Numbered from the stretch's first letter, positions 40,798-64,000 are shown. The stretch is 64,000 nt of DNA from Azolla caroliniana (GCA_043228905.1 JBHGNT010000008.1:7688001-7752000), one strand, 5' to 3'. Program-made: numbers and translations. Notes: generated from the sequence alone by a model not told the origin.

Positions 40798-42376
40798 TCA
40801 ACCATCCAGTAACATTGGTGCCCTGCATGTGCGTGCATTATGGCCAGTGCCTTTGCATCCGGTACAATGATGAACCTCTTTCGATACTTCTTCAATGTGG
40901 ATTCTTTTGCTCTTTGGGCGTCCTGGCGATCTTCTGGTTGCTGGAGCTAGTATATCACTTAGTGTAGTAGGGATAGTAACAGGATGCATCTCCTCTTTAT
41001 ATGTTTCATAATATGAAGTGAGAAAGAAAGCTCCATGAACATAGCTATGAACACTCTCGTTCCTACACAGTATTGCACATGCAGCATGAGAACAAGGAAC
41101 TCCAGATTGTTGCCATCTGCAGCACGAACATGTCTTTGATCCCAAATGCACAACTTGAGGTTTTGTTGACAGTACTTCAAATTCCAAATCAGATTTAGCT
41201 ATTATACGATATGAACGCCCAAGTTCACATGCTTTTCTAACATCCTCCTCAATGCGAGAGGTCAACCGCAAATATGCTTGTTCTCTTGCATCTATCACTA
41301 GAGAATGTGCCTCTTCTCTACGCTCAGAAAACCATGCCATGAGTTTATGCCTGATCATTTCTAACATGGCTAAAACAGGTAGCTCTCTTAACGATGAATT
41401 CAAGGATTCTGCAATATTACAGGTCATGTGGCCATACCTTTGGCCAATAAACTTTGAATTTGCCCAATAAATAGGATCAGCAGCAGCAAGAATCCATGTA
41501 GTAGCCTGGGGATTGGCTGCATGCATTTCCTTCATAATATCATCATAGTCTTCAACATTATTTGCATGTGCTGCATTCCATAGCAAATGAGCAAGTTGTG
41601 TGCTCTTGAAAGCCTGTCTAAAGTTCTCAGATAAACGCCACATGCAATAAGCATGTGGTGTACCTGAACCAAATACTGACTCCACACCTTCAACTAATCC
41701 CTTTTGCCTCTCAGATATAAAGGTTACCCTTTCTGAATGATGCAAGCAATCTTTCAAGCATTGGAGATACCAAACCCAATTATCGTCATTTTCAGTCGCG
41801 ACCACAGCAAATGCAAGGGGGAAGAGACCATCATTACCATCTATTGCTGTTGCTGACAAAAGGGTACCCAGATACCTTCCTTTAAGATGTGTACCATCTA
41901 AACCAACCACTGGTCTGCAATAAGAGAAGCCTTTCAAACTGGCATTGAAGGCAATGAAACATCGAGAAAATCTTCCTTCTGATGTTCTCTGTACAAAGGC
42001 TATGCTTCCTGGATTGGTTTTCAAAATTTCCTCACAATAACCCTCAAGTTTCTTGTATGCTTCAGTATGGTCACCATGAATAGCAGAATGAGCAGCTTCT
42101 TTTGCTCTCCAAGCCAGTCCATATGAAATGGTGACACCTTTCTCCCTGTGAATGTCTCTAATGAGATCTTTTGGTTTTAAACTTGGTTGATCTCTGAACC
42201 TATCAATAGTGTGCTTTGCAAGGCCCCTCGTACAAGCCTCTTTATTACCAGTACGAACAATACCCGCACAACAATGGATACCATTTAACTTCTTTATTGC
42301 ACACTGAGGACCTCCTTCAATAATAGACGCATGAAGACGCCATTTGCAATTCTCTGAGCTACATTTTACTGTGTAT
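40798..42376 (-). CDS. Exon 9, MULE transposase: MuDR zinc DBD, DDE domain, SWIM finger, CCHC knuckle
   Basis: RYTVKC..ENCKWRLHAS; VVGLDGTHLKG; FPLAFAVV..ENDDNWVWYL; NIAESLNS; CSCCRWQQSGVPCSHA; RRSPGRPKSKR; CTGCKGTGHNARTC. No stops. Confidence 0.95.
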
Positions 42377-45300
42377 CTACAGATTTGCAATAAAAACTTG
42401 TCTGGTGAGGGCTTCAAATGCGCACTGGCCTAAGAACAAAGAAATTTGGCAAATAGAACAAGGGAATGCTTTTGAAACCAGCAAAGCTTACCTCTTCTTG
42501 TCAGCTTTAAGAACGCGCAGTTCCACATGATGTGAGATTGCATGATCTTTGACTTCCATTTTCAATGCCTCCAAGGAGGCCCAAATTGAACCTTGTTGCA
42601 ACATCCCTGGTCCAACTGCACTACCAATATTTGGATAAAAAAGTCCAGTATACATCTCAGAAAATTGCACATTGCAGAAAAAATGAAATATGCAGTCAAA
42701 TGAAGTAACATAAAAGTGAAAAAGATCATGGAAATTACAATATTACGATAGAAAGAGAAAAAACAATATGTACACAGGCTTTGGTTGGTGTGATCTCTTG
42801 TCATGCTGAAGTTACATTGACAAGGGAGAGAAATTCTGTTGAAAAGAAGAGAAATACATGTATATGCTATATTCATTGACCTACAGGTGTATGGAGAAAT
42901 ACAAACCACCTACGAAAGAAAGAAAGGTATATTAACATATTTTAAGAAGCCAAAATGGCCTATAAGACCAGACAAGGGATTACATCTTAAGTGTTATCTT
43001 ATCTTTGAGAACAACCAAAATAAATGTTACTAAGTAAAAAATGTGACTAAAGAATCTTATTGTAATATTCTCAAGTCAGATATATTGTAAATTTTGTCTT
43101 CGAAAGATCTCTAGCATAGGTCGATCCAGAATGGAGAGGTCTCAGAAATGAGGTAAGCACCTGCAATGGCGGGTGATAGCAGGCCTTTATCTTTCGATGA
43201 CAAGGGGGTGAGATTGTGGTTTGGAGGCACAAGGAAACTTAATGAAATAATTATCAATATAAGGGCATTTCTGAGTGTTTCTCATTTCAGGCAGCCTTAT
43301 AAAAATGACATTGTCGAGAAAACTATGCTTTATGATGTTCCACAAAAGTAATAAAACCTTCAGTGAATGGAAACATATTTCAACCTGTATTTAGGAAATT
43401 ATCCCTTAAAATGATAAAAGACTTGACCATGAGTTCATTTACAAGTAAATCTATGGTCACAACTCTAAAATACCATCAAATTTGAGATCAGAAATAATCA
43501 GCAGTAAAACATTGGCATTCAACCATCCAAAATTTAAACATATGGGCATAAAAAACCACAAGATGTCATACATTTCATATTGACCAAGTCTCAAAATTCA
43601 AATATATGTAAAAGTATCAAATTCCTCACCATACACATAAAGAAGTAGCTCAACATTTTTCTGCTTATAGACACAAAACAAAAAGGACAGTTTCATTACC
43701 ACTTACCCATGGGTGCTGAAATCGACATATCAGATTTCTCAGGAGTCTCAACCTCTTCTACTTTCCCACGGAATACCTATGATCATTAAATCTATAATCA
43801 ATATTTGAAAAGCTATCTGCTAAAAGCATAATATATGGACAGAACCTACAGTAATGGCAGAGCTCAATCCAGGGTTGTCTGCAATAGGTTTGGCCTGTTC
43901 TGACATTCCTGATGCCTCTGTTGAATAAACATATTTTGCCCCTGGCTGTTCAAGTGCAACAAAGAGAAGAATTCATATAAGCCATTACTGTATACCTCAA
44001 AAAACAACATGTGTTAGCACCTGCATCTCTGATTTTTGCTCTATCAGAAGTCCAGGTTAAATTAAATAATAAAGTTGGGAGGCATACAAAAGTTCATTAC
44101 ATTTTATGCAAAGTAAAAGACAAGATTTGCGAAAACAATCAAATTACCATTTACCAAAAATAAAAAGATAAGAACGGTTTTCTATCATTCTCATGAACAG
44201 TTGTCCAGAAGAACATTCTCCTATAGTGAGATGAAAGGTAAAATTAGCCATTCCTCATTCTTTTGGAATGCAAATATCAAGACCAATGCGTAGTTTAGGG
44301 TACTCCATAGATCTTATACAGGTTAGCTTTGTGTGTTTCAAAATTCTTGACTTACCTCTATCATCTTCCCTAACATATTCCAAAAAGGGAAATATCCTAG
44401 TGCTTGGATACTCCTATTTCATGCTTCATGCAAAGTATGTTTATTAATAAGGTGTTCGTTAACATTCAAAAAGATAGAGCTGGGGTTACAATTAATCTCA
44501 ATGAACTTTGCGTATATCAAGGCCTGAGCCTCAAGAAAATATAGTAGCCAAACCTGTAAAATATACAAAAGGAGGAAAAGAAAAATATCCTAATGCTTAG
44601 ATACTTCCTATTTCATGCTTCATGTAAACTATGCCTATTAACAAGGTGCTTGTTAACATTCAAAAAGATACGGCTAAGGTTACAATTCATCACAAATATC
44701 AAGGGCCCCTGCTTCCAAAAAGTACAGTGGTGAAACCTGTAAAATATACAGGAGAAAAGGAAAAAATTCATCATAGAATTTCCTCACTTTTCTCCACTTG
44801 AATGAGAGTAGGACCAATGAATTAAATTAAATTGCACATAGATACAAACTAGTACACAATATGAAGGTACTTCTCAAGCGGCCAAAGTTTTCCTATGGCC
44901 TCACTTATTGAAGGGTATACTTTCCTATTTCTGAAATCAAGTGTATACTTTTGTTTAATTTGTGAACTTCGTAAGTTTTCTCTTTCATGCCACTGATGAC
45001 ATACTCATAATTGAAGTTATCTTACTATTTTTGACATATCTTAAGCTATTATAATTACATAGAATTGTGCATATTCCAAGTGAATCAAGCTTGATTAGAC
45101 AACTCAGCATCTCAAAGGACATCATGTAATCACACAAATCTCGTGAATGACTACTGCAGGTGTAAGGCTTCATAAAAATTGAGAACATGAAAATAGGAAA
45201 ACATCCCTTTTTCCTCAAAATATAGGTCCAGGGTCTCTAACCCTATCAAAAACATTGCCATGAGAAATGGGACAATTCCAGAAAACAAAAAAAAAACTTA

Positions 45301-48300
45301 CAGCTTCCCAAAAAAAAAAATGAAACTTTAATACAAACATACTGCTGTTCATTTTGTAAATGACTCCAGCATTTAACTCGGAAACCACAAAACATAGCAA
45401 GTTCTACGTACAGAACAGATGGTGAAAAAGAGATACAATAAGCCAATAGCACTTCGGTATGCCATGCAATCAGGACAAAATCTGACCACCAACCACCATA
45501 TCAAGGATAAAATTAAGCTTCTGCTAGATATGAACTATGACCAGCCTGCTTGTCACTTCTGATGAAACTAAATTCACAGTCACATAAAGCAATACGTCTA
45601 ATTCTAAGTATCATGATTCTCGTTTTCTTTTGAGCAAAATTTATTTGCATCTATCTTTATATTATGAAATGATAAAGAAGCTCCAAACATTCAAAAAATT
45701 ATTGCCCATCAAATAGTCAGGCATTACCTGAGAAGCAAAGAGTGAAAGTATTCCACCCCCTGCCCCAACATCAACTACCACACGTCCTTGAAAATTGGGA
45801 TTTGCTAAAATTGCTGTATGGTACAAAGATAAGAAAAGGTATAATGAGCTAAATAGTAAATATACAACTGCAACTTCAATATAATCTATAAATTACATGG
45901 TAAATACAATGTCAAAGTTATTCAGTAATCATATATGTAGGTCTACCAATTCATGAATAGGTAATATACCCGTTTTCACATAATCTAAGGTAGTATACCT
46001 GTTCTCACATAATCTTGAAGCATGTTTTGCTGACGAAGAAGCTGCCCATAACAATGAAAGTATAGTTTGGCAGAAGATTTATCAGAGGTGCTTGCAGTTT
46101 TCAAAGGTTCAATAGCACCATTTGCAAATTTATCGTCTGTTATATCAGAAATTTTCAGTATGTTACATGATTGCATCAAGCTATCAGAAGAAGCAATATT
46201 GCAAAACAGTAGTTCCAAACTCCATGTTACCTACCGTATTTAAATTCATTTCCAGCAAATTTAAGTAAAGCCTATGGATCATCATTATATTTTTTTGACA
46301 TTCAATATCCCCTCCAGAGATGAATGAAAACAAACACATACATGTATCTTGTCTCCATACACATGAAATTACAGCATAGACATCACATAATTATACACAC
46401 ATTCGAAGAAATGTGTGCCTTTGCATGTTCAGTGTATTTACAACTAGCCAATAGATCTAACATGCATCTAGATACACATAAATACGTATACATACATGTG
46501 TACGTTTCCGGATCAGAGTTTGTATACACATGCATATATCCTCCTATGCAAATGTGTATGTCTGTGTATTAACGGTGTCCAATATGCATGGGTGTATGTA
46601 TGTATTTACAAGAAGATACACATGTGTATTGTACAGATAGGTGTCTCGACTGTGAAGGCTTCTGTCTCCTCTGGTTTCCCAAATATATAAATTTTATGAG
46701 TATTCAAGAAATCATGACAAAGGCAGTAGAATAGATACAAATTTTCCAATAAATTGTCTGCTTTGAAAGATTGAAAATCAATATACAGAACTCTTTGAGT
46801 ATCAACTGCAATGCATATTAGCAATTGAAAAACTCTTTGAATCTCAAATCATCTATACTTCTATAGAAATTCTTGCTTGCACAGAAGATAAGATAAACAA
46901 AGAAAAGGTATGAACTTGTTATACTGTTATTATACTTAATCTGAGAAGAATATTATCATTATTCCAATCATGGAAAACTAGAGGGTAATACCTCCGGTTT
47001 TCCAAAAAAGGAGCTTTTGCAGTTCTCACTCATGCAGAGGATAAAGATAAACAGTGAAAAAGCATGAACTTGTTAAACTGCCGCTATACTTAATCTGAGC
47101 TGAAAATTGGCATTATTCCAATCAAGGAAAACTGGAGAGTGATACCTGTAGACTTCCATTCATGAAAAGCTGTAAATAATGAGTTGCTTGCTTCCTCTGA
47201 CTTGAAACAAACTGCAAAGGCACTGGTGAATGCTGCCTATAGGTAGTTTAAAACCAGTGCAACAATGTTACATTTCATTAAAATATGCAATGACTGGTTA
47301 TCGTTTTATTAAAATATAGAATAAATGGTGATTCCAAAAATTCAAAAGAAACTCTTATAAGATCACTAATTCGCAAAAAGAAAGAGAGAGCACCAACACA
47401 AAAACACACTAAGGAGATTAAAAATTCCAAAGAAAATTTTAATTTTAAAACATAGTTCAATTAAAAAGAAAAGTGTGTCACAAAAAAGTCTTTCTGCCAT
47501 AGCTTCCTAAAACTAAATGTCTTGAAACGTGACCATGACTACAAATAACCAGGTTTGCTGCCTCTTTGATGGAACTGAAATTGTTGCCCTCTGAAAATAT
47601 TACAATGGAGTATTCCACTCTGGAAAATAAAGTTTGGCAGCACAAAAAGGGTATCTCCATGATGATGGTTTTGCTCGTACGATGTTATGTGCATCAGAAT
47701 TGTGGTTCTGGTTGGCTTTTCCAACTACAACAACAAAGAGAAATCGCTTTAATTGTCATGCTTCATCTGAGCTGTGAATTATCTTTGGCCACGACGTTTG
47801 CTTGTAGAAAGGAAGAAAGTTAGATATATTCTTATATCAACAAAGGCTGGGGAGAGCAAGAGATTTGGAAAGATGTTTCAAGAGGCTAAAATGGCCAAGA
47901 AGACCAAACAAGAGATTACATCTGAAAATGTTGTCGCATCTTTGAGAATAAAAAATCAAAATAAATATAGCTACGTAAAAAAAAGTAAATAGAATAGAAC
48001 AAGACATGACTAAAGAATCCCAATATCTATTCATGTAAAATTCTAGCAGATCGAACATGAGATTGCATCTTGAAATAGAGTTCTATCTTTAAGAACAAAC
48101 CTGAATATTCTGAACTTAGATAGACAGAAACTTTTGCCTTCAAAGGATCTCCAACATGGGTCAATCCACTATGGAAAGAAAGAAAGAAAGAAAGAAAGGT
48201 ATATTAACGTCTTTTAAGAGGCCAAAATGGCCTATAAGACCAACAAGAGATTACATCTTAAGTGATGTCTCGTCTTTGAGAACAACAAATCAAAAAATTA

Positions 48301-51300
48301 AGTAAATAATATTCCGTAAATATAAAAGTATATACGATAAAAAGAAACGAGGGAATCTGGTTTTCGGCACATGTGAGATTCTCAAGTTCGATATATTGTA
48401 GCTTTTGTCTTTGAAAGATCTCTAGCATAGGTCGATCCAGAATGGAAATGTCTCCGAAGCGAGGAAAGCACCTGCGATGGCAGGAGATAATGGCTTTTAT
48501 CTGTTGATGACAAGGGTGTTGCGGTCGTGGTCCATGGGGCCGGGGCCTACGTGCACGGCAAATTGTTATTGCCCAATCAATTGTAACCCGTTTGTTATGT
48601 CCTGGTCAGGAGCCCATTTGTGTATCCATGATTGAATTGTAGCATTAGTTGAATTGACGGGAGTGACGGGGCTAAAGAAAGTTGTGATTGTTTTTTGTGG
48701 ATGAGCTTGTGTGGCTGTATTCTTCAATAACTTTTCCTGATGTCTATTGTATTCTTGGAGAGATCTCCAAAGTGAGGCACGCACCTTCAGTGCGGGATGA
48801 TAATGGCCTTGATCTGTTAATGGCACAGGTAACAGGAAAATGATGCAGATGGTTTGGCCTATGTGCATGATACATTGCTATTGTAGAATATATCGTAACC
48901 CCTTTCAAGTGTTCTGACCAAGATTTCACTTGTGTTTCCCTTGATAGACTGGTAGCCTGTGAAGGTGTGATGGAGCTAAAGAAAGTCATGATGGTTCTTT
49001 GGTAATGAATTGTTGTGGTTACATTGTTGTCCTTCAACAGCTCTCTATGTCTCTTGAGTTCTAATGAGAACAGGCCCAAGCGTCATTGGTATTCATATTT
49101 CATTATCTTGTAAGATGGGTTAAAGTTTGTTTGAGAAGGCAATGGTCTCTCCCTCTTATTTCACAAGAAACAACATAATGGCAAACATAGTGTTCTTTTG
49201 ATTCCACTCCCCGATGGTATAATGGGCAGATTTGTTCTTCATGACACAATTGGCAGATTCATTCTTCCATAGGTTTGTGTGCATATCTACCTATCTCGCT
49301 TTCTGACTGATGTGAAAAGGGGTCCTGAGTTGCTCTATCACACAACAGAGCACATGAGACAGATGTGTATCAATATAAGAAGCTTGATAGGAAAAGAGTT
49401 CTATGGATTGGGCCATCTTCCTACCAAGTGATGTTGTTGGGTGGATCCATGTTCTTTTACTATCCAATTTAGTGATATCAGCTCAGATCATTATCCTTTT
49501 CCATTTTAGTCATATTTAGGTGTGGCCAATCCAGGCTATATGGCAATGAAGATGGTGCATTTATATTTATGCTATGCAATGAACCATTCTTGCATTTCTA
49601 AGACAGTTTGTACTATGATGAAACGCAACTAAAATACAGTTAGCTCCAGCATGTAGTGATTGGAGACTTTACTGTGAAATGACTGATTACACTATGGAGC
49701 ACATGAGATAGATGTGTATATATACAAGAATGCCTGATGATAAATCCATCTTACTATGTGTAAAAAGAGCACCTCATTTCTACCAAGAAATGTCGTGGGG
49801 ATGATCCATGTTTCAGTTCAGATCAATCAATTCTTTTTCACTTGGTCATGTTTAGATGTGAACAATCCAAGCTATATTGCAATGGGGTGGTGCATTTATA
49901 TTATGCTATCCGATTGGAACTATTCTTGCATTTATGCATACCAACAATGATTATCTCCATTTTCAGCATACTGTCCTGATGAAATAAGTGCCAATCTTCA
50001 GTACCTTTTGCTTAGCGAGGTTCCAAGTTCATTGAATACCAGTCAATACTAGGAATAATGCCTTGGCTGGGTGGGTGTGGTGTGAAGGTGGTTTGCATGA
50101 ACACTGCAGATTCTGTGGGCATCTGGGTTATCCTCTCCTGAGTAGCATGTGTGTATATGGATCTGATTAACTTGATCTGTCAGAGTCTACGGCCCATGCT
50201 CCTCTCCAGGCATCTGCTATGGTCACATGTAACAAGGTTTGGAGATGTGATGACCCTTGAATGGAATCAGAGAGACGAGACTGTCTTTTCCCCCTTGGTA
50301 CATCTGTGGTATATATCAATGACTCAAACTCAATCAAACATAAAATGATCTCTAAACTCCGTGATATGTTGAAGAGCTGCAAAATGCATGAAAAACCTTA
50401 GGATGTGGGGCACTCTGCCATCCCTTTATAGATAATGAGAAAGTGTGAGATATCTAGACAGAGTGGATGACACCCTTAAATAGTGGCACGAGCCTTATCT
50501 GTTGAGATTATCAATAGAATCATCATCCTTAATTGTGTGGAAGTTGTGGATCCCTGATGTCACGAATTTCACACGTGGCAGCCTGCTCTGGCATTGAATT
50601 CCCCCAAAAGGAAGGCGTTCCAAGAATAAGGTATTTCATGATCCCCTTCATTAGGCATGTGTATGTGTGCTCCCCATTTCTGCATTCCTATCATGTTGTA
50701 GCAAATCTAGAGCCTGTGGAGGAAAAGTAACCTTGGGCAATGTATAAAGTTTGATCCATTGTAAGCTCTAAAAGATCCACAACAAACATGCCTCTGGATA
50801 TAATGCAACTATTTGAGTCCAGCTCTATAGTTTCCTTCTAAAGAGTATGGACATCCCTCCTAATCTTATTGATGCATAAAGACTCCCATTGAAAGCCTTA
50901 TATCTCCAGTATCCCTCTCTGGGTTCTCATGGGTCTATCTTATATATCCCACACAGGAATAAACCCTTATATTACCACACTCAATGCAATGACAAATGCA
51001 TCATACTAACTTCTTCTATAGGCCAGGCCCTCCACTAACAAACAACATGCTAGGAAATCACCATAGATCAAGCAAAGGCATGCTGACAACGAAGACAGTG
51101 AGTACTGAGATACAAGAGCAAGATCCTGGGGATCATTGTTCACTATGTCCAACTGCCCTGACAATGAAGACAGTGAGTACTGAGATACAAGAGCAAGATC
51201 CTGGGGATCATTGTTCACTATGTCCAACTGCCCAAGGACACCCAAATGCACTTGATGAAAATCCTCATAGCCCACTCCACTGCACCATTCAACCTTCCAT

Positions 51301-54300
51301 ACCATGTCCCCTCACCCCTACTCATCCCATACATATTAGTTATACTCTTTATGCTTGTAAACCATCTCAAGAAGCATTCCACCACATGCACTAAGGTCAT
51401 TAACATGGATCATTAAGAAACATGGAGACCGAGTCTTAACAAGGCAAATCATTGGAAAGATTTAGAGAGACCTTTAATGTCAATGATTGCTCGCATGATA
51501 AGGAGCAAAGCATCGGTGCCCCACGATATAATCTGGGCAGAGATGGGAGCAATAACCGAGGCATTGTTCTGATTAGTGACATTTATCCAACATCTTTGGG
51601 AGCTACCTAAACGAAGGTACCCAAGGTTGGCACTTATGTCATCAAGACAACTAGCTGAAAATGGAGACACTCATTGTTGGTATGCTGAAATGCAGCAATG
51701 GTTCGAGTCACATGGCATGAGTATAAATGCTCTATCGTCGTTCCAATATAGCTTGCACTGTCCCCACCTAAATATGACCAAAGTGGAAAAGAATAGAGTG
51801 ATCCGGACTGATATTATTAACTTGGAAAACAAGATAACATGGATCAGCCCCAAAATACCACTTGGTACAAAGATGGCCCACTATAAAACGCACTTCATAC
51901 ATACATCGGAGGATGGATTCGTCATCAGGCCACCTTATATGGACATACATCTACCCTATGCGCTACGTACTGTGATAGGACAGCTAAGAACTTCATCACA
52001 TCAGCTATAGATTGAGGTAGGCAGATATACATGACTACCTCTAGAAGAGAGAATTTGCCAATTGTGTCATCAAGGAGTGGAATCTGAGGAACACTATGTT
52101 TGTCATTGTAGTGTCTTTTATGAAATCAAAGGGAGATACCATTGCCTCTTTAAACAAGGCTTTGGCCCACTACGCAAGGTAATGGAATATGAAAACCAAC
52201 GATGCCTAGGACTTTTCTTGCTAGAGCTCAAGAGACATCGGGAAAAGTTGTTGAAGAATACAGCCACCACACAAGCTCATCCACAAAGAACAATCACAAC
52301 TTTCTTTAGCCCCATCACTCCTACAAGTTCATCACGGGATACACAAATGGGCTCCAGACCAGGACATAACAATCGGGTTACAATTGATTGGGCAATAACA
52401 ATTTGCCGTGCACGTAGGCCCCGCCCCCATGGACCACGACCTCGACACCCTTGTCATCGATAGATAAAAGCCATTATCTCCCGCCATCGTAGGTGCTTCC
52501 CTCGCTTCGGAGACATTTCCATTTTGGATCGACCTATGCTAGAGATCTTTCAAAGACAAAAGCTACAATATACCTAACTTGAGAATCTCACATGTGCTAA
52601 AAACCAGATTCCCTCGTTTCTTCTCTTTTCATCTTATTTACTTTTATATTTACTGTGTAGTATTTATTTTATTTTGATTTGTTCTCAAAAACGAGACAAC
52701 ACTCAAGATGTAATCTCTTATTTGGTCTTATAGGCCATTTTGGCCTCATAAAAGACATTAATATATCTTTCTTCTTTCTTTCTTTACCCCACTCTTACAC
52801 AGTTACAGAGGCAACGATGTCCAACTATAATAATGATACAACCTTACCTTAAAGTTTTCCCTAGTTGTAATTATACTTATACAACTTTCTGGCCATTTAC
52901 AGATATAGCCCACATGGGGCACATTCAGACTATTTACATATATGGTCTCCCGATTTCAATTTCAATTTTCGATCTCAGCCTCGGCCGAAATACTCATTTA
53001 CTCCATCCGATTCAGTTCCTTCTCTTCCCATCCGGAGGGACCTGTTTCCCAACATAATTGTAGCCATCGTGTGTCTCATACACCAATTCTGTCCTCAAGT
53101 AGACATTAATCTCTTTTTTCCTTCCCATGGATAATATCACATCTTGACCACCATCACCTCATCCATAGATCCCCATTATAGTATTAGAAAACTTCCTAAT
53201 ACTATGTCCACAGGCTTCGAGTTCCCATAGCATAGGATTGCCATCAATGATGAGTAGACTATCACAATAGGTGGTTCTCTTCCCACCTGTGTTTTGTATA
53301 CTATAGGCATGCACGTTCTCCCACAAGTAACTTGCAATTTGATCAAGTCATCATCAACATAAATAGATGAATCATTCAGACCACATAGGATTACCTGCTT
53401 GTGGATGAAGGTGGTTCTTGCCTGCTCAAATGGGAACTAGAAGACGAGGTACTCTCTTTGGCTGTCTTCACATGCTCTCAATGATTCTACAAATGGGAAA
53501 GCTCTTCATTCTTGAAGCCAAGTTGAATGCATTGTTCTCTACCTCGACATCAAGCATTGAGATTTTCCAACAATCCCAGCCCAAGTGAACATTTCGAATG
53601 GAGGGGCATATTGATTTTCAATCTGTCCTTACTTCTCTCTCAACCTCAATCCAATCCTTCTTCAGATCATCTTTGATATCACAAAGGTCCAATTCCCTTC
53701 ATCATCATGTTCATGTAAGTTTTTCTTACTCTTGACTTTAAAACTTGAGGTTCACTAATATGATTACTTGGTTTACACAAGTGAATTTAGGTAGCTTTCT
53801 AAGTTCTTGATATTTCTAGAGAGTTCAAATGTTTTTCAAGAGCAACAAACCTAAGGTAAGAACACTGAACCGGAAGAGAGTCACCTCTTTCTTGTTCTCG
53901 GAAATTAGCTCTCAGAGAATATCTTCTACTTTAAAAAATTGATATTCTAATTTGCTTGTCATCCTAAATAGATTATGAGGAATCATGTTTAATTAGATGG
54001 AGGAGAGGATGATGATAGTCTTATTTTTCACAACCACACGATTATTAACCTCTTTACTTTCTTAAATGACTGCAAATGAAGATGTTTACCCTCACACCCA
54101 CACTCTACATCTTCAAAGACCAAGGCTTCTCAGGTTACTTTTGGTCTTTCCTATGTAATCAGTAGTGGTCATGTCAGCTGGTGCTTTGCAGATACGTAAT
54201 TTTCATATTGTACATAATATAATACCTTTAACTAGAAAAAGAAGAGAGGAAAAGGAATTGTCACCTGGTCAAATTGCAAGACGTTAATTTTCAAGCAAAC

Positions 54301-57300
54301 ATTGGACCTTTCAAGAACTAGTTTTTAGAATTCCTTACAACAATCAACACTAAAACGAAACATCAATGCAGTAAATTTTTTGAAACATTACCTTGGATGT
54401 ACTGCTGATAGAGCTATGATCCACCATCCAAATTTGAGTGCTTGGTCCCATTTTGTATACCTAGAAATAAACAAGGTGAAATGTTTCACAATGCAAGACA
54501 AGTAATCCATCAGAAATGTGTGTGATGTGCATGTAGTCTGTTTTGAAAACAAACTTCATTCAGGTCATGAATCCACATGCATATGCTTTCACTCATTTAT
54601 AAGCATAAAAATTAAGATTAAACTTGAAAGAATTTGCATCTTAACTCTCGACTAATGTCTAAAGTAAGAGAGCATAGTGTATAAGATAGATAGATTATTG
54701 TCATATTCGGAAGTCAAATATGACCCGTAAGACCAAACATATAACATTTTTCACACAATACACATGAAAAATGAGTAGCGACTCTTGATGTTTAAGAACT
54801 TTACTAATGAATGTCAAAATTGAGAGTGCATACTATGAATGTGAGTAAAATTCGTGCAAGGATTGGGTTTGGTCAAAGATATGTGAAAAGCATTGTTGAA
54901 TGTGGTCCAAGCCAAAGAGCATTGTATCGAAGTGTGAAACTCAGACTCCCGAAATTGTTTAGAGCAAAGACTGCACAATCGACTACTCTCATCACTTATG
55001 CTCCAATGCCCTATCTCACATCGTGGCGGGTGTAAGATAAGTCGTATTGGGGCAATGGTTCAGATGGTAGACAATGGAATGGGCTCTAACATCTATTGAT
55101 GTGCGTGGTTTCCCCATTCAACGAAAAATATGGTTTTGTTGTTAGGTGCAACATATGCAATATAATGTTGAAAAGTGTTACATTTTTCCCATGTTGTGAT
55201 ACCTTGGAATTGCAAAAGGGCCTCATTGACAAAGGAATCTATTGATGCATCATGAATCAAGTACGTTGGATACCCATCTTGCAAATCATTTTTCTATATC
55301 TTGTATCCAACAAGAACACAAAATTTTGCTTTTTTTCTTGACTTAGAGAAACTTTTGAGGTTCTATGCAATGCAAAATCACTATTGGATATATTAACATT
55401 TCACATTTAGAGTTACACTAATTTGCTTCACCTAATTAATAAGGCCTAGACATCCATAACTCTTTAGGAGTGCCTTTGATGGCACTAAAGAGATATTGTC
55501 CTTGTATCAGTCACTTTAATGGTCAGCTTTCCAGGTTTGAAGATAACATGAAGCCACAAAACAAAAAGTTCTTTAATTAGAAAACAACCATGCATACTCT
55601 CTAGAAGTCATCATAGCTTGTATAGTGTACAAGTAGATAAGAGGACCATGATTGGTCGCAAACAAGTGGAAACCATTGCGATTGAAATTGTGTAAATGGG
55701 TGGTGAACCTTCAATTTTTGGGAAACAAAACTAATTTCCATTTCCAACATTGCCTCCACATGCATCTAATTCCCCAACTTTGGTGGATCTTATCATATCG
55801 ATGTCCATGACTTTCAAAGGAACCCTCTACTCCTCCATGCTAGTACATACTTTCATCTGTTTTGCCAAGTATTTTGATGTGTGCATGCTTGGGCTAATGA
55901 AGCAACTAAAAACCCTTCGAGTCCCAATAGATATGCAATGGGGTATCTATGTATTGTATGAATCAATATCATGAAAAATATACACTTCTTTTGGGCATGT
56001 CTTCAAAACTGGAGTTAAGTAAGGATAACCACTCTCTTCAACCTTTATATGGATGAGCTATCTAATTACATAGAGAGTGCAGGTTTAGGAGCATGCTTAG
56101 AAGGGGGTAGCCATACCAATATTACTATATTGTCAATGACATTCGTATCCAAATATCCGGAGGAACTGCAAAGACATCTAAATGCTTTTAAGTCATTTTG
56201 AGTAGATAAAGATTGGTCGGTCGACCTTGATAGAACTAAAGTAATGATGTTTAATACCACTCAAGCATGAATAACGAGATTAGAACTGAATTATTCTTGG
56301 TAGAGGCAAATGTGGCGTACATACAAACCTACACATATCTAGTAACAACATTCATATGCCCTCGGTTCTCCCTACATGAGTTTGCATGTGCTCGACTTCC
56401 CCCTGGATATCAATCCTTCTATGCCCTTAGAGACAACATGCAAATATACAATTCTAAGAACCACAAACTGAATTGTGATTGTTTGCTATACATGGAACAA
56501 AGATTGGGGCATCAAATATTCCATTTGCTTCAGCGTGGAGGGTGGGAAGAGATGAGTCTAGAGCTAAAGCCCTTATCATCCACTTCATGGATATTGACAA
56601 GAAAAAAGCTTTCCTATCTAAAAGAAAGGCACTCAAGGGTGGAAAAATATACTTAGATGACGATCTCACTCCAGCCCAAGTGGCACACCACAAAGAAAAC
56701 ATGCCACGAGTGCTTGATGCAAGAAAGGAAGGAGAATGGGCCGTATATAGAGATGGCAAGGTCATTATTACAGAGAAGAGAATCGCATGATGATATATGG
56801 CCTATGAGACCCTACGCATGACCATATGGAATTGCAACGGCTCTCTAGGGCCAGATGTCGGATATTTTGAAGACACCTTCAAAAACACAGATATTGCTAT
56901 GTATACAGAGACCCACCAATGCATGGCTAGGAAACTCCCTGAGGTACAAGGATATGGATGGAAGTCAATTCGTCGTCCCCAACCAAAGACACCAAGAAGC
57001 ACTAGAGGTTCGGGAGGAGTGGCTGTGCTATATGAAAAGGAGCTCCACGATAGAGTGCATGTTGTCCATAAGGATGTAGATGCTACATGTGGATACGAAT
57101 CAAAAGAGGGGATCTTATTGCAATTTGCTACTTTCCACCTGCCTACTCAAGGTTTGCACCTCTAGGTGAATCATCATATCTACCATTATATGATGATATC
57201 ATAAGATTTGCTACTATGGGGGACATAATACTATTAGGAGATTTTAATGCGCGAACCAAGGATGAACAAACAACTAAGTTTAACACCAACGAGGCTGTCT

Positions 57301-60300
57301 ATGGAGAAGTTATGGTAGAAGAGGTTGGTCTAAAGCGACAAGCTCAAGATATGAGTGCTATAACTGTATGAGAAACACTTTCTAGCCTTGGGAAGTGTGC
57401 ATGGATTTGTGATATATAATGGCTTGTCACAATGGCCTGGATCAAATGCTTTGACATGTTGGAACCCAAAAGGAGGTGCAAGCACAATCGATTATCTAAT
57501 GGGATCTCCATCTCTTATACCAAAAATAAAAGAGTTCACTATATCAGGTAGACCTATTGGCTTGGCAGCAGATCATGCATATCTACGCTTTGAGGTAAAG
57601 GAAGGATGCACAAAGGATGTATATGCTAAGGAGAGGGGGCTGGCTAAGTATCTATTTACTCGCAAGACAATTGATGTGTATAGTTCTGGTGTATACAATG
57701 GCATGCTCGATTTGGATCCTTTCGCACCCCTTGAAGAACTTACCCAAGGATTGTCAAAATCATTGCATAAAGCTGCCACATGCCTTTCCTCACACAACAG
57801 CCAATCCCCCCAAACTTGGTCGAGTAATACAAAATAGTTGGTATGATGAGGAATGTCGTGATACAAAGAGATGCTTGCAGCATGATGTAACACGGGGCAT
57901 TTATACACACAAACAAGCGAGAGCAACCTTCCAATGCCTCGTAAGGAAGAAGAAGAGATTGTATTTGGCTAAATTTGAAGATCATTTGTATCGCTTGTTT
58001 CTAGGACAAGAAAGTAAAAGAGCATGGAAAATGTTTAATGAGAGGCAACCTACCACACAACTGACCTCACCTCAGGTGTGGCATGAATATGCAAAGGTTC
58101 TATATGATATCCCAGGGCAACCTCCTCTTCCCCACCCACATGCCCACATGAATCAACCTTTTTTACTCCACAAAATGTAAGAAATGCCATTGATTGGCTA
58201 CAATTTGGGAAGCCCAAGATCATGATGGTATGCCCGTGACACCTTGCTCCCATTGCTAGCGCACATCTTTAATAGAGCCATGTGTGAAGGTTTCCCTACT
58301 AGATGGACTCAGCATACCATTGTGCCAATCCTCAAGAGTAGAGACCCCATGATGCCAAGCAACTATAGGACAATCATGATTGACCATTACTTGGCTAAAC
58401 TATATGGCTTGATTCTAGAATCAGAATTGAGTATATTGGCTGAGCAGAATGGCTGCCGTTCAGTTGGACAAGCAAGCTTTCGGAAGGGGTTCACAACTTT
58501 GGATCACATATTCACCCTTCGGGCCCTTATTGAGGAGGGCAAAGCCCATAATAAGAGGATTTACTGCTGCTTTGTGGATTTCCGAAAAGCCTTTGACATT
58601 GTTCCACGTGCTCGGCTTATGTTGCGGCTAGAAGCCCTTGGTGTTCCTACATATATGCAATGGGGAATCTATGCACTCTATGAATCCGTGTCAGGAAAAG
58701 TGCGGTCTTCCAAGGGTTTGTTAGAGGCGGTGGCTAGCACAATCAGAGTGAAGCAAGGATGCCCACTATCACCCACTCTCTTCAGTCTCGATATAGATGA
58801 GGTAACACATTACATAGAGAGATTCGGTGGTTTGGGAGCACGCCTAGCAGGTATAGCTATACAAATATTATTATATGCTGATGTTATTGTGCTGATTTCT
58901 AACTCTCCGGAGGGACTCCAAAGACATCTAAATGCCTTAAAACTATTTTGTATGGACAAAGGTTTTGTCAATCAACATGGATAAAACTAAAGTGATGTTG
59001 TTTAACACCACTCAAGCATGGGTAACAATCAAAACCAAAAATCTTCTTGGGGGAGGAAAGGTGGAATACACACACTCCTACACATACCTAGGAGTAACAT
59101 TTACAGGGTCTAGGTTCTCCTTACAAGAGGTTGCTAGTCCAACCAACCTCATCCTATCCAACCCCATCATTACCCACTGCTAACATATAGAGATGAACAC
59201 ATACAATTTGTTCAAAGCTTTGAATATCTTAGTATGGATGTACCCGCCACAAATAAATGGAGTGCATGCTTTGATTCTAGGATTCAAGCCAGTTGGAAAT
59301 CGTATTACCTTTTGGAGAACCAATGCAACCAAAGTGATACTTGTGGATGGAAAGTAGAACTAATGTTCAATGCCATGGTATCTCAAGTATTGCTTTATGG
59401 AGTAGAGGTATGGGGTGGCACCATCCCTCTTAATGCATGGAATGAGATTGAGAAAATTCAAAAGATGTTTTTGAGGAAATTTAGGAGTTAAATGCACTAC
59501 CTCTTACCAGGTTATGCTCTTGGAAACAAGTGTTTGGCCCATAGAAATATTGGCACTCCAAAGAGTATATAGATACATTCAAAGTTCAAGAATATGCCGA
59601 ATCATCGATTACCACATCTTGCTTGGAATGTTGGATGTAAGCTACAAAAGAATCATAAGAGTAAAATTCTCACATACGGTTGGGTTGTTGATATAAGAAA
59701 ATGATTTAAATGATGGGGTGTGGATGATCTTTTAGAGCTTTCGGGTGATACTATGCAATATGTAATGATTGAGGAAAGGCTGGTGGAATCATTAAGGATG
59801 AAGTGGGAAGATGTTAAGAAGACAAAGTTAGAATACTACATTGCAAATGTCAACCCTGAATGTTGGTCTCAATATACAGCAAGAATGCCTAGATCGTATC
59901 CAACCTTATCTCATTACCGATCTGAGTAATAATGCTTGTAGCGCCCTTACACTACTTCGCACTCGATCTCACAGGTTAGGCATTGAAGTTGCATCATGGA
60001 ATCAAAATGCAATGAATTTGAAGGCATATAAAGTATGCAATGAAGGCATGGTAGAGGATGAATGTCACTTGCTCTTCACATGCTTGGCATATAGTGCAAT
60101 TCATTCAAGATATGTTGACATACTAAGAGAGAGTGATAACTTAAGTGCCATACTTAAGACACCACCCAGAAGGTTGAGCTCATATGTGTATGCTTTATTC
60201 ACGCATAGAGACTTTTTACTTCAATGTCTGAATACCTCTTTTTAGGAAGGAGACACATATCAAGAACACATGTATACTCTAATCCCATAGGTCAATTTTG

Positions 60301-63300
60301 GCCTTTTTATGGACGATAAAAATTCCAATTCTAATTCTAATGATTTCATATGACTAAATGACACATGATCTCCACTCCTAACCCTAGAGTCACTCTTCAA
60401 ACATGATCCATCCACACCAGGCGACTATGATCTGTCCATGGGAAGTGGTCTTCCTAGTTTGGCTTCCATACCCTGACAAGACATTTCCTGTATTGTCAGC
60501 TTACATAGTTGCTTTGCTTCAAAGCCTCGTCAAGCTCAATAGCACATTGCAAATCACAATATCTATCTGGCACCTCCACATGTAGCATTCTATATCATCA
60601 TGAGTAGACCAACTTAATGGTGCAATTCTGATTAAGCCTGAAATCCTAATATTCATCCCTCTATTCGTTAGTTTCTAGCCATGGTTCAGTGCCCCTAATC
60701 TAGAGCAGCAAACATCAACCAATATTTGATCTTTCATTTGCAGAAATTGAATAGTGAGCCAGTTGTTACACTTCATGTGACGCAATTGCCTCTGAATTAT
60801 TATGCCAACAATCTAGAGCTACCATTATCTATTATGATAGCCAAAGCTGCACTTGTGTTGCACGGAATCCATGTTTAATACCCACACAAAACACATCAAA
60901 GTACAATACCATAATATTCCTGGGATTGTGATCATTGGAAATCTTCTAACATATTGTCCCTCTTTTGCTCATGTATCAGCCACAATTTATTCTCAATCCT
61001 CTATTGCGTCTTCTCAGCCATCAGTATTTGAGATTTTTCTCTCCAATGGTAATTATCTCACACACCTAATCAATTATTTTGTTGTTGGGAGCTTCAAGCC
61101 TATCTGTACTTTGTCTTCTCTATTTAGTTTTGAGTTTATTTATTATGTTTTGAGGGTCAGTCTTAAGTTCTTATCAACTGCTTTTTCCATCTCTCTATCC
61201 TCGATCACAATCTCTCTACAGAGGATGGATTCATCATCAGGCCATCTTATATGGACATACATCTATTCTATACATTGTGCAGTGTGATAAGGCAGCTAAG
61301 AACTTCATAACATCAGTTAGAGATTGAGGTAAGGAGATATGCATGCACACCTCTAGACGAAAGATTTTGCCAATTGTGACATCAGCAAGTGGAAATTGAA
61401 GAGCACTATGTTTGTTATTGTAGTGTTTTTTACAAATACGAGGGAGATACCATTGCCTCTTTAAGCAAGGCTTTGGTTCACTAATCAAGGTGATGGAATA
61501 TGATGGCCAGCGGTGCTTGGGGTTTTTCTCGATAGAACTCAAGAGACACAGGGAGAAGTTGTTGAAGGACACAACACACACACACAAGCTCATCAACAAA
61601 GAATAATCACAACTTTTTCTTTAGCCGCATTACTCCTACTCATGCTACAAGTCAATCAAGGCCCACACAAATGGGCTCCTGGCTAGGATATAGCAAAGGG
61701 GTTACAATAGATCAGGCAATAGCAATTTGCCATGCACGTAGGCCCCGGCCTCATGTACCACAATCTCACCACCATTGTCATCAGCAAATAAAGGCCATTA
61801 TCTTCCAAATTACAGGTGATTCCCTCACTTCGGGGACCTCTCAGTTCTGCATCGACCTATGCTATATATCTTTCAAAAACAATATAGTATATGTGACTTG
61901 AGAATCTTGCACATACCAAGAAGAAGATTCTTTAGTCACTTTTTATCTTATTTACTTAGCAACATTTACTTTGGTTCGTTGTTTTCAAAGACGAGACACC
62001 ACCTAAGATGTAATCTCTCGTTTGGTCTTATAGGCCATTTTGGCCTCTTAACGGACGTTAATATGTCTTTCTTTCTTTCTACTAAATTTCTTTCACTACT
62101 ATTTCTTGAGTTTCTCAACCTTATCAAGGAGGGCAAAGCCTATACAAAGTGGATTTATTGCAGCTTTGTAGATTTCAGAAAAGCCATTAACAATGTACTA
62201 TGTTCTTGGATCATGCAATAACATGAAACGCTTGGTGTTCCGGTAAGATATGCAAACAAGGAGTAAACCAAGGATGGCACGTATTGTTGATTCTGAGGTA
62301 TCACTTACATAGAAAGATTTAGCAGTTTATAGCCACACAAAATTACTCTATGTTGACAACATTTTGCTTATCCCCGACTCTGTAGAGGGACTATAAAGAC
62401 ATCTAAAAGCCTTTAAAACATTTTGTATGGATGGTAAACCTAGAAAAAACTAAAGTGATGATCAGAACCAGAAGTCTTCTTGGGAGAGAAAAGGTGGCAT
62501 ACACATGATCCTACTCATAGCTATGAGTAACATTCACAAGGCCTTGGTTCTCCTTATAGGAAGCAACTTTTGCTTGACTTCTCATGGATATGCAACCCTT
62601 GATGCTCTTGGGAGACAATGTGTACATATACAGTTCCAAGAGCCACAAACTAAATTGTGGCTATTTGATATACTTGTCATGCCAAATCTTCACAAGGCAA
62701 ATAAGTGGAAAGATTTGGAAAGACCTTTAGCCTCAATGATTACCCACACGATAAGGAGCAATGCATCACCATGATATAATTCAGGCAGAGATCAGAGCAG
62801 AGATGAGGCATTATTCTGATCAGTGACCCATATCCTACAACTTTGGGAAATCCCTAAACGAAGATGTCATCGACACAACTTGCTGAACACAAAGATAATC
62901 ATTGTTGATATGACGAGACACAACAGTGGCTTGAGTCACATGGGATAAACATAAATAAACTACCCTCTGTTACAATATAGCTTGGGTTATCCCCATCTGA
63001 TCGTGGCCAACACGGAAGTGAATAGAGTAATTCGAACTGATATGATCAAAATTGGATAATGGAGAACATGGAGCAGCCCCACAACATCTCTTGGTACAAA
63101 GATGGCCCACTATAAGGCACACTTTTTTCACACATCTGAGGATGGATTCATCATTAGGCCTTCTTATATCAACATATATCTATTGCACGTGTTGTGCAGT
63201 GTGATAGGGCAACTGCAGAACTCTTAACATCAAGTAGAGATTGACATAAACTTATATGCATGCACACCTCTTGAAGAAAGAATCTACCAATTATGGCATC

Positions 63301-64000
63301 AGGGAATGGAATCTGATGTAGTTATACAGATGATTCCATGCGTGTTTCTTTCAACCATGAAACTTGAAATTTGAAACTCTCAAACTCGTTTTGACACATT
63401 TCTCTGACATTATGTATAATAAAGTACAGTGCAATACATTTACAAAGAAGTGATATCAAGTGATGAAATAATATTGTAACTATGGCATTAAACAATACAG
63501 TTCAGTACATACAATATAATATAATATACAAGCAAGATTTTATAGCTATGGTGCTGTATAATACAATTCAACACATAAATTTATGATGAAAAAAACAATA
63601 CAACTCAACACAGCACAATTTAATAAAATCATGACAAGAAATGAGGCAAGATTTTGGAACTACAGTGTTGAATGATACAACACAATACAAAAATTTATGA
63701 AGAACAACTGACCCAAAAGGATGAGTGCTTACATGAGTATGATCCAAATGGCAACGAAACTTAGAGCTTTCATCATCGAGAACCGCCGTTTTCTTACGCT
63801 TTGAAACTGTTGGTTTGCTCGGCTCGAAAACCACAGTCTTCCCGCACTGATCTAATGTGAGAATTGCAATGGCGGGAACAAGGGGGGACCACGAAAGGGG
63901 AAATTCTTTAGAAGGAGGAGAATGCAAAAGAGGAGGGGGGGTAGAATGTGACGGAGGGGGAGGAGAAGAAGGAGAAGAAGGAGAAGAGAAAGGAGGAGGA
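40798..64000 (-). CDS. Chimeric PRMT4/CARM1 N-terminus + MULE (MUSTANG-like) transposase gene, 9 exons, 5'-partial: 63733->64000, 54392-54460, 47146-47236, 45999-46136, 45728-45813, 43850-43945, 43707-43776, 42492-42615, 40798-42376
   Basis: All eight introns are GT-AG with matching phases (0,0,1,1,0,0,1,2). The spliced frame is stop-free for 2520 nt including the stop (839 aa visible). Exons 1-7 follow plant PRMT4 order; exons 8-9 are a MULE transposase. Confidence 0.82.
42492..42615 (-). CDS. Exon 8, start of the MuDR DNA-binding domain
   Basis: tgcag|VGPGMLQQGSIWASLEALKMEVKDHAISHHVELRVLKADKKR|gtaagc. The phase-1 acceptor fits exon 7 and the phase-2 donor fits exon 9. A second in-frame acceptor lies 9 nt downstream. 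Confidence 0.8.
42915..43235 (-). mobile_element. LINE 3'-end fragment in intron 7
   Basis: Matches the 3' ends at 48175-48520 and 52440-52785; (TTTC)n tail. Confidence 0.85.
43707..43776 (-). CDS. Exon 7, PRMT motif II and start of the double-E loop (E>A)
   Basis: catag|VFRGKVEEVETPEKSDMSISAPM|gtaagt; compare VIKGKIEDIELPEKADVLISEPMG. Confidence 0.9.
43850..43945 (-). CDS. Exon 6, PRMT post-I motif
   Basis: aacag|PGAKYVYSTEASGMSEQAKPIADNPGLSSAIT|gtaggt; compare AGAKHVYAVEASEMAEYA. Confidence 0.9.
44388..44755. repeat. Diverged tandem duplication (about 194 bp) in intron 5
   Basis: AAATATCCTA.TGCTT.GATACT...AAACCTGTAAAATATACA occurs twice. Confidence 0.8.
45728..45813 (-). CDS. Exon 5, PRMT SAM-binding motif I
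   Basis: tacag|AILANPNFQGRVVVDVGAGGGILSLFASQ|gtaatg. Confidence 0.92.
45999..46136 (-). CDS. Exon 4, PRMT4 YFxxY helix region
   Basis: aacag|DDKFANGA...SSAKLYFHCYGQLLRQQNMLQDYVRT|gtata; near-identical to the CARM1/PRMT4 signature YF..YG.L..QQNM.QDYVRTG. Confidence 0.92.
47146..47236 (-). CDS. Exon 3, PRMT4 N-terminal domain
   Basis: ctatag|AAFTSAFAVCFKSEEASNSLFTAFHEWKST|gtatc; resembles SFSRGVVIKF..E.DS..F...FEEWK. Confidence 0.75.
47820..50050 (-). mobile_element. Cluster of 5'-truncated LINE 3' fragments in intron 2 (best copy 48175-48780)
   Basis: LGLFSLELKRHRELL; shared 3' UTR; (TTTC)n tail at 48175-48198. Confidence 0.85.
51083..51233. repeat. 75-bp tandem duplication
   Basis: CTGACAA.GAAGACAGTGAG...CAACTGCCC occurs twice. 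Confidence 0.92.
51420..52785 (+). mobile_element. LINE ORF2 C-terminus and 3' UTR (RTEX-like)
   Basis: GQLRTSSHQL.IEVGRY...ICQLCHQGVESEEHYVCHC zinc knuckle; (TTTC)n tail. Confidence 0.85.
52790..53054. mobile_element. LTR fragment related to 24591-25172 and 28314-29225
   Basis: Ends CTTCCCATCCGGAGGGACCTGTTTCCCAACA; shares ATTTACA.ATATAGCC. Confidence 0.7.
54392..54460 (-). CDS. Exon 2, PRMT4 N-terminal domain
   Basis: ttctag|VYKMGPSTQIWMVDHSSISSTSK|gtaatg; resembles recalled plant PRMT4 LFKLGP...SISSAKE. Confidence 0.75.
55850..60340 (+). mobile_element. Composite RTEX-like LINE in intron 1: older RT remnant 55850-56480, ORF1 end 56490-56790, APE endonuclease + RT 56797-59135, second 3' piece 59136-60340
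   Basis: IYLDDDLT (ORF1); WNCNG, LLGDFNAR, STIDY (APE); FVDFRKAFD, KQGCPLSPTLF, LYADV (RT); RTRSHRLGIE..VEDECHLLFTC; (ATTCTA)n tail. Clade call is inference. Confidence 0.88.
60780..60930 (+). mobile_element. Highly decayed copia RNase H remnant
   Basis: YDSQS...HTKHIKVQYH. Confidence 0.5.
61220..63320 (+). mobile_element. LINE fragments in intron 1 (3' end 61220-62080; decayed RT-to-C-terminal piece 62100-63320)
   Basis: Same family as 51420-52785; FVDFRKA motif; (TTTC)n tail at about 62067-62080. Confidence 0.8.
63733..64000 (-). CDS. Exon 1 (partial): Pro/Ser-rich N-terminus and start of the PRMT4 PH-like domain
   Basis: Frame open to the window edge (PPPFSSPSSPSSPPPPSHSTPPPLLHSPPSKEFPL...FRCHLDHTH). 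Donor CAT|GTAAGC is phase 0 and fits exon 2. Confidence 0.65.

Follow-up and report, generated by a model that had tools for sequence, protein, structure and literature searches.

A chimeric messenger joins PRMT4 exons to a transposase gene

The window that we analyzed, a 64,000-nt stretch of DNA from Azolla caroliniana (GCA_043228905.1 JBHGNT010000008.1:7688001-7752000), carries on its minus strand, between 40798 and its edge at 64000, a gene in which exons derived from PRMT4 (CARM1) precede the transposase gene of a Mutator-like element (MULE). A preliminary description, made from the sequence, had proposed that a MULE in an intron of a duplicated PRMT4 was captured by splicing. We mapped RNA contigs from public runs onto positions 40600-46300 of the window (5701 letters compared); such contigs reveal presence, not absence, and transcript starts, abundance, and rare isoforms are beyond their reach. 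Four runs (X1, X2, X16, and X17), which represent four studies and three organism labels and whose library type was guessed, gave a minus-strand messenger on a single contig per run, with the structure 45999+ / 45813-45727 / 43944-43847 / 43773-43707 / 42615-42492 / 42376-40811. The contigs of X2, X16, and X17 are 1951-1972 nt long, and each crosses five GT..AG joints including 43707/42615, as does a 459-nt contig of X1 with one mismatch. The joints crossed in the four runs are 45813/45999, 43944/45727, 43773/43847, 42615/43707, and 42376/42492, all of which read CT..AC on the plus strand and hence GT..AG on the gene strand. Depth in the intron bins is zero, a dispersed 310-bp repeat excepted, which indicates that the runs are RNA. 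The host–transposase messenger, with PRMT4 exons spliced in frame onto the MULE gene, is real and transcribed, and both junctions predicted in the preliminary description (43707/42615 and 42492/42376) are present in it.

Further upstream, a 30-nt loose end that the contigs have beyond 46140 finds its unique match at 47150-47179, and the 3' end of the next exon (exon 3) is thereby fixed. The X2 contig reaches 610 nt 5' of 46140, more than the window has room for if exon 1 is as modelled, so that the messenger would begin, and might also have its start codon, beyond 64000. The parts of the gene and the PRMT4 exon fossils around it are the following.

63733 to 64000, off the window edge, minus strand: predicted exon 1; donor CAT/GTAAGC at 63733, no homology, no reads
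54392 to 54460, minus strand: predicted exon 2 (VYKMGPSTQIW...); splice sites, phase 0/0, no read support
47146 to 47236, minus strand: exon 3, end of the PRMT4 N-terminal PH-like domain; 3' end from the contig loose end, Pfam and hidden Markov model (HMM) matches
45999 to 46136, minus strand: exon 4, ...SSAKLYFHCYGQLLRQQNMLQDYVRT, helices over the S-adenosylmethionine (SAM) pocket; joint 45813/45999 in four runs
45727 to 45813, minus strand: exon 5, motif I, VVVDVGAGGGILS; joints in four runs
43847 to 43944, minus strand: exon 6, AGAKYVYSTEAS..., post-I acidic residue retained; joints 43944/45727 and 43773/43847, tblastn
43707 to 43773, minus strand: exon 7, FRGKVEEVETPEKSDMSISAPM+G, last PRMT4-derived exon of the messenger; joint 42615/43707 in four runs
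43296 to 43448, minus strand: PRMT4 exon fossil (LLVNELMVKSF...), skipped; tblastn, two stops, 9-residue deletion
42492 to 42615, minus strand: exon 8, first half of the MuDR DNA-binding domain; joints on both sides, Pfam DBD_Tnp_Mut positions 6-40
42377 to 42491, minus strand: phase-2 intron of 115 nt inside the DNA-binding domain, borders GTAAGC...TGTAG; joint 42376/42492 in four runs
40798 to 42376, minus strand: coding part of exon 9, rest of the zinc finger, MULE core, SWIM, and CCHC; stop at 40800-40798
40308 to 40397, minus strand: PRMT4 beta-barrel exon fossil, 3' of the transposase gene; tblastn E = 3e-4, 42-45% identity, 3-residue deletion
38875 to 39216, minus strand: fossil of PRMT4 C-terminal exons with at least five stops; tblastn

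Exon 7 ends, as previously described, with ISAPM plus a G before GTAAGT, in phase 1. Exon 8 opens with 11 nt of the former transposase 5' untranslated region (UTR), now read as VGPG, followed by the ancestral transposase ATG at 42604-42602, and carries the expected first half of DBD_Tnp_Mut. The MULE-SWIM-CCHC exon put at 1.58 kb in the preliminary description is a 1579-nt stop-free stretch (42376-40798), in which Pfam finds the remaining half of DBD_Tnp_Mut followed by MULE and SWIM, with a CCHC knuckle at the C-terminal side; the 3' UTR extends to at least ~40450. The acceptor of exon 5 is cryptic, and its use has removed four ancestral residues (GTYH).

Exons were joined in local scripts that tracked frame, ATGs, and codon changes, and homology searches were run exon by exon. 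The confirmed exons share one joint frame, in which the sole stop is the terminal one. Modelled exons 1 and 2 are bounded by good splice sites, and their phases are compatible; once they are included, 839 codons can be read without interruption between the window edge and the stop at 40798, and in modelled exon 1 this frame is the only stop-free one of the three. Of these codons, at least 276 precede 42604 and span seven splice junctions, and six in-frame ATGs precede ATG 42604, the first of them at 54451 (context AAAATGG), from which 747 residues would be encoded.

Several side observations concern the introns and the transcript ends. A dispersed repeat of ~310 bp lies at 42914-43220, in the intron that separates exon 7 from the transposase exon, with other copies at 61757-62079, 48186-48519, 52433-52778, and 47870-47982 (73-77% identity among copies); it is very abundant among the RNA contigs (summed depth up to ~1700), looks like a short interspersed nuclear element or a miniature inverted-repeat transposable element separate from the MULE, and has no Rfam match, Rfam having given none on 38-48 kb. 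In the 9.3-kb first intron of the modelled gene, an antisense (plus-strand) long interspersed nuclear element (LINE) at 56267-60245 is reduced to endonuclease and reverse-transcriptase pieces with at least eight open reading frame (ORF) fragments, which bears out the earlier remark that neighbouring transposable elements are broken. The end of exon 4 and its donor (GATTATGTGAGAACAGGTATACTACCTTA, 45970-46027) form a 29-bp tandem duplication in the window and in L001, a genomic contig of a close relative, and are single in L004 and L005, two contigs of a more diverged one; the donor in use is that of the first copy. Finally, at 40767-40861, X2 and X16 each contain two 3'-end variants, with 1 vs. 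5-7 differences per 95-164 nt, and the more diverged variant has changes in common with L006, a genomic contig, which suggests that two copies (homeologues or alleles) are expressed or that the samples were mixed.

Origin of the PRMT4-derived and transposase halves

The PRMT4 side was compared to a protein (P0157) that is a true CARM1 orthologue, matching CARM1 structures with E = 1e-111 and other PRMTs with 1e-52, and that carries PH_PRMT_N and PRMT_C. Where the preliminary description counted seven PRMT4-like exons, five are of PRMT4 origin by homology (47236-47146, 46136-45999, 45813-45727, 43944-43847, and 43773-43707) and, except for the 5' edge of 47236-47146, are confirmed by joints or by the loose end. 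The two most 5' ones (54460-54392 and the one ending at 63733) have no significant similarity to PRMT4, exon 2 displaying a weak likeness to the FKLGP part of its PH domain (E ~4). Exon 3 matches positions 77-104 of Pfam PH_PRMT_N with E = 0.004, which is below the cut-off, and an HMM of plant PRMT4 N-termini with E = 0.002. Exon 4 matches PRMT4 proteins in tblastn (E = 9e-11, with 105 PRMT4-like matches), and exon 5 has CARM1 chains among its best PDB matches (E = 3e-4). SAM-binding motif I (VxDVGxGxG) is present in exon 5 as VVVDVGAGGGILS, and the post-I acidic residue is found in YSTEAS in exon 6.

In the messenger, the PRMT4 sequence ends after the fourth strand of the SAM-binding fold, and the catalytic loops are gone. 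The double-E loop (ISEPMG...E) is lost, its first glutamate being replaced by alanine in ISAPM and its second lying in the skipped, decayed exon, where LLVNERMLE reads LLVNELMVK. The THW loop, the beta-barrel, and the dimerisation arm are encoded only by the fossils at 43448-43296, 40397-40308, and 39216-38875, none of which is in the messenger. Since the double-E loop, the THW loop, and the barrel/dimerisation arm are all missing from the PRMT4 part, the product cannot act as an arginine methyltransferase.

These three fossils are the broken 3' exons of the preliminary description. In tblastn, PRMT4 fossils flank the transposase gene and are collinear with the ancestral gene; the PRMT4 exons retained by the messenger are stop-free, while those left out carry many stops. 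The skipped fossil at 43448-43296 has no contig depth beyond the edge of the adjacent repeat-rich bin. Collinearity on both sides is consistent with the original proposal that a MULE inserted into an intron of a duplicated PRMT4 and was then captured by splicing, and the chimeric in-frame messenger is found in several relatives. The separate PRMT4 whose existence had been left to be checked probably exists as well. Contigs of X1, X16, and X17 match 46004-46078 with six mismatches and then run into sequence absent from the window; with this loose end at 46078, they probably stem from the messenger of a separate, ordinary PRMT4 paralogue, an exon of which starts at the equivalent of 46078.

The best protein match of the transposase half is 52% identical and clusters with others from ENA metagenome assemblies (69 sequences in all). 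Contigs of this cluster hold a classical MULE, with 175-bp terminal inverted repeats (TIRs) that are 91% identical and with the same two-exon structure, the intron being at the same codon. One apparently intact element is the following.

L002:963-4530 (ENA ERZ1034401 contig; also L003): TIR-bearing MULE with 175-bp TIRs and at least 69 protein variants above 90% identity

The start codon of this sister element aligns one residue before ATG 42604, and the intron of L002 is at the same position as 42377-42491; by this comparison, the 115-nt intron is inherited from the transposon. A maximum-likelihood tree places the window protein as sister of the TIR-bearing MULE family with 100% support in the Shimodaira–Hasegawa-like approximate likelihood ratio test (SH-aLRT), within an 8-row clade of unnamed ENA/JGI proteins that lies outside both angiosperm MUSTANG-like clades. 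On this phylogeny, the captured element is from a lineage-specific MULE clade and not from MUSTANG. The TIR-bearing MULE occurs in a metagenome assembly series that also contains this plant's DNA, and is probably a recently active family in this lineage. The same series contains a contig 98.3% identical to the fusion locus, and within it fusion-locus contigs have a coverage of 1.4-1.9x vs. 5-10x for contigs of the TIR-bearing family.

At the window gene, the DBD_Tnp_Mut + MULE + SWIM architecture is present without TIRs. Self-comparison around the gene revealed no inverted pair that was longer than 33 nt or exceeded 85%, nothing there matches the sister family's 175-bp TIR, and the window contains no second copy of the transposase. 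The best other protein is 52% identical and locus coverage is at single-copy level; in the proteins and contigs searched, no near-identical copies, which would have spoken against the preliminary description, were found. Within motifs that we take to be catalytic (FISERQKG, CMWRL, LDGTH, and NIAESLN), the second D is changed to E (FISDRQKG to FISERQKG) and the H of CxxH to R (CMRHL to CMWRL). Three residues are deleted after NIAESLN, next to the E, while the first D (LDGTH) and the E (NIAESLN) are retained, as are the cysteines and histidines of the zinc finger, SWIM, and CCHC.

Selection, product, and competing explanations

Codons of the window were compared to those of contigs from organisms B and F. 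The transposase half (exons 8-9) displays 23 synonymous vs. 7 nonsynonymous differences, on 372 and 1332 sites, respectively; the ratio of nonsynonymous to synonymous rates (dN/dS) is ~0.09 (binomial p = 2.5e-10), far from the value of about 1 that would have refuted the preliminary description. Since TIRs are lost and catalytic positions changed, yet the protein is under strong purifying selection, this is a domesticated transposase, and constraint between copies of the same locus points to selection at host level. For the PRMT4 side, a diverged relative with ~8-10% noncoding divergence was informative, the genomic contigs L004 and L005 of which hold exons 3-5 with an intact frame. In these exons 10/315 sites differ, compared to 178/1848 in introns (Fisher p = 5e-5), which means that PRMT4 exons diverge three times more slowly than introns. 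The same comparison has no power in L001 (~1% divergence). From the same series, L006 holds the 3' end of the transposase, with CCHC and stop conserved, joined to the downstream PRMT4 fossils. Taken together, L004/L005 and L006 indicate that both halves predate that divergence; the fusion junction itself is seen in closer relatives only, and the locus has the same flanks in relatives of 1-10% divergence.

We consider it probable, though well short of certain, that this is a host–transposase fusion gene encoding a PRMT4-derived N-terminus on a MULE body. Its proposed history would run as follows. The PRMT4 gene would have been duplicated, introns included, and a MULE would then have inserted, in the same orientation, into the intron that follows the exon fossilised at 43448-43296. 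An acceptor located 11 nt before the transposase start codon would have captured the donor of PRMT4 exon 7, in phase, thereby skipping the next PRMT4 exon and reading in frame into a complete two-exon transposase gene. The unused downstream PRMT4 exons would have been dispensable, since another PRMT4 exists, and would then have decayed, while the element would have lost its TIRs and mobility and been kept for a host function. The product is predicted to have ~750 residues or more, with a dead, truncated PRMT4 N-terminus followed by MuDR zinc finger, MULE core, SWIM, and CCHC. By analogy with FHY3/FAR1 and MUSTANG, it is most likely a sequence-specific DNA-binding regulator, and its PRMT4 part may have a role beyond that of promoter and 5' exons. 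A more ambitious proposal appears rather improbable to us: that the PRMT4 remnant is a folded, noncatalytic module binding SAM or arginine substrates, tethered by the MULE zinc finger to DNA sites, which would make the protein a metabolite-sensing or PRMT4-antagonising (decoy) chromatin regulator. The preliminary description had likewise credited the DNA-binding protein with a CARM1 PH-like/SAM-binding module. This module was overstated, as the PH-like part is barely recognisable, the methyltransferase fold is cut after its fourth strand, and the part may not be translated.

Several points weigh against a translated fusion. The 5' end, and possibly the start codon, lie beyond the window edge at 64000, and exons 1 and 2 are models only, with no significant PRMT4 similarity found and no read support. 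Within modelled exon 1, the first ATGs (ATGATG, 63776-63771) are out of frame; the 79-codon upstream ORF that starts there crosses three splice junctions, running through exons 2-4 to 46103, and the first in-frame ATG falls within its span. In exon 3 the PH-like part shares only 26% identity with PRMT4, and the fold is cut after the fourth strand, so that the N-terminal part may not fold. Coding constraint on PRMT4 exons 3-5 is borderline (5 nonsynonymous and 5 synonymous changes against the diverged relative, dN/dS ~0.29, p = 0.05), and against organisms B and F the PRMT4 part has 3 nonsynonymous and 2 synonymous changes. Minor isoforms with an internal start may exist. The fusion protein is predicted from RNA and genomic sequence, and its translation would begin within PRMT4-derived exons. 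Among searches for the 5' end, a protein-guided scan of JGI metagenome contigs found no relative, a search with the exon-1 frame gave no match, one with the first 200 residues of the large exon gave only 46% relatives, and among exact look-ups of 13 window ORFs one matched (leading to contigs L006-L010) and 12 were absent.

The strongest competing explanation, which we regard as unlikely but worth serious consideration, is that the PRMT4 exons provide only a promoter, a 5' UTR, and upstream ORFs, and that the protein is the 563-residue transposase starting at ATG 42604. This ATG is one residue after the start of the related transposon and near that of stand-alone homologues (574-603 residues), the ATGs that come first in modelled exon 1 are out of frame, and the PRMT4 part is truncated, has lost its catalytic residues, and is under borderline coding constraint. 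However, the at least 276 codons upstream of 42604 are open while unused PRMT4 exons of the same age are full of stops, and each of the six in-frame ATGs before 42604 would yield a fusion protein under scanning. In addition, the leader would exceed 800 nt and contain 13 upstream ATGs in its modelled part, so that a downstream ORF would be poorly translated, and the slow divergence of exons 3-5, a third of that of introns, comes with changes of which half are synonymous.

A stand-alone MULE gene nested in the intron of a PRMT4 pseudogene was initially our leading reading, held with moderate confidence, and was overturned by the RNA contigs joining exon 7 to exon 8. In its surviving form, a gene with its own promoter for which the chimera is a minor read-through by-product, we now judge it very improbable. 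In-frame ATGs at 42655 and 42604 would give proteins of 580 and 563 residues, the size of homologues, but in every run the contig that covers exon 8 carries on into exon 7. In the four runs, no contig continues past 42615 into 42616-42700, and depth is zero in the bin 42701-42891; no contig begins in the intron upstream of 42615, where a MULE start had been considered. ATG 42655 is therefore outside the assembled messenger. That the locus is instead a still-transposing, Pack-MULE-like element that transduplicated PRMT4 fragments is scarcely credible: although transduplicated host domains are documented in MULEs (PB1 and peptidase C48; PMC4948706) and the nearest relative is a TIR-bearing multi-copy MULE, the PRMT4 exons here extend over more than 20 kb of LINE-filled introns with fossils flanking the transposase in gene order, TIRs were not found, coverage is at single-copy level, diverged relatives have the same flanks, and orthologous copies are under purifying selection.

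Comparison with known fusions and domesticated transposases

Full-text literature searches found no paper describing a PRMT–MULE fusion, and the PRMT4–Mutator pairing seems to be undescribed. If our preferred reading of a fusion gene is correct, the record of its birth is legible in one locus, with kept host exons, skipped and decayed exons on both sides, a 5' UTR turned into a linker, the ancestral start codon retained, TIRs lost, and a still-mobile sister family. It would also be an independent MULE domestication outside the angiosperm MUSTANG clade, and would allow a test of whether the inactivated methyltransferase fragment has a function of its own or only supplies a promoter.

Vertebrates offer well-documented host–transposase fusions born by splice capture (SETMAR, CSB-PGBD3, and KRABINER, the last reportedly by Cosby et al. 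2021), and plant transposase domestications (FHY3/FAR1 and MUSTANG) are mostly stand-alone whole genes or transduplicated domains. By analogy, the fusion architecture and birth mode proposed here would be those of CSB-PGBD3, and the pairing of methyltransferase and transposase recalls SETMAR, with the enzyme part dead in our case. In CSB-PGBD3, which involves an intronic piggyBac in human ERCC6, as here, the transposon is intronic and in the same orientation, a 3' splice site lies just upstream of the transposase ORF, and upstream host exons are joined in frame to the whole transposase. The CSB-PGBD3 product consists of an N-terminal host part and a complete transposase part. Unlike in CSB-PGBD3, the downstream host exons have decayed here and the fusion is the sole product of the locus, and a plant gene has contributed a truncated enzyme fold to a Mutator-like transposase rather than to a piggyBac one. 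SETMAR (SET lysine methyltransferase and Hsmar1 mariner) similarly has methyltransferase 5' exons and, on the 3' side, a DNA transposase with its DNA-binding domain, immobilised and conserved. However, SETMAR keeps an active SET domain, whereas the PRMT4 part is without double-E loop, THW loop, and beta-barrel/dimerisation arm.

CSB-PGBD3, SETMAR, and KRABINER are cited as host–transposase fusions in PMC12062965, which also presents tetrapod fusions, e.g., KRABINER, as arising by alternative splicing/exon capture of an intronic DNA transposon that unites a host domain with the transposase DNA-binding domain, as in our case. KRABINER differs in kingdom and transposon superfamily, and here the host part is an inactivated enzyme fragment and not a regulatory domain such as KRAB.

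Among plant proteins, MUSTANG (MUG) and FHY3/FAR1/FRS have the same domain set (DBD_Tnp_Mut zinc finger, MULE core, and SWIM), with MUSTANG-like angiosperm proteins (583 residues) displaying ~39% identity to the window protein, and they too have lost TIRs and catalytic residues and are under purifying selection. However, the window gene is no orthologue of MUSTANG, since it groups with the TIR-bearing MULE family and unnamed metagenome-derived proteins outside the angiosperm clades, and none of MUSTANG and FHY3/FAR1/FRS carries PRMT-derived exons. According to PMC4948706, MUG genes have been identified in angiosperms only. Finally, the MUGB PB1-MULE genes share with ours a host-type domain N-terminal to a domesticated MULE transposase. 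In MUGB, according to the same paper (PMC4948706), PB1 was acquired by the mobile element itself, through transduplication, before exaptation, whereas here the host exons remain in their original gene context and are joined to the transposase by splicing.

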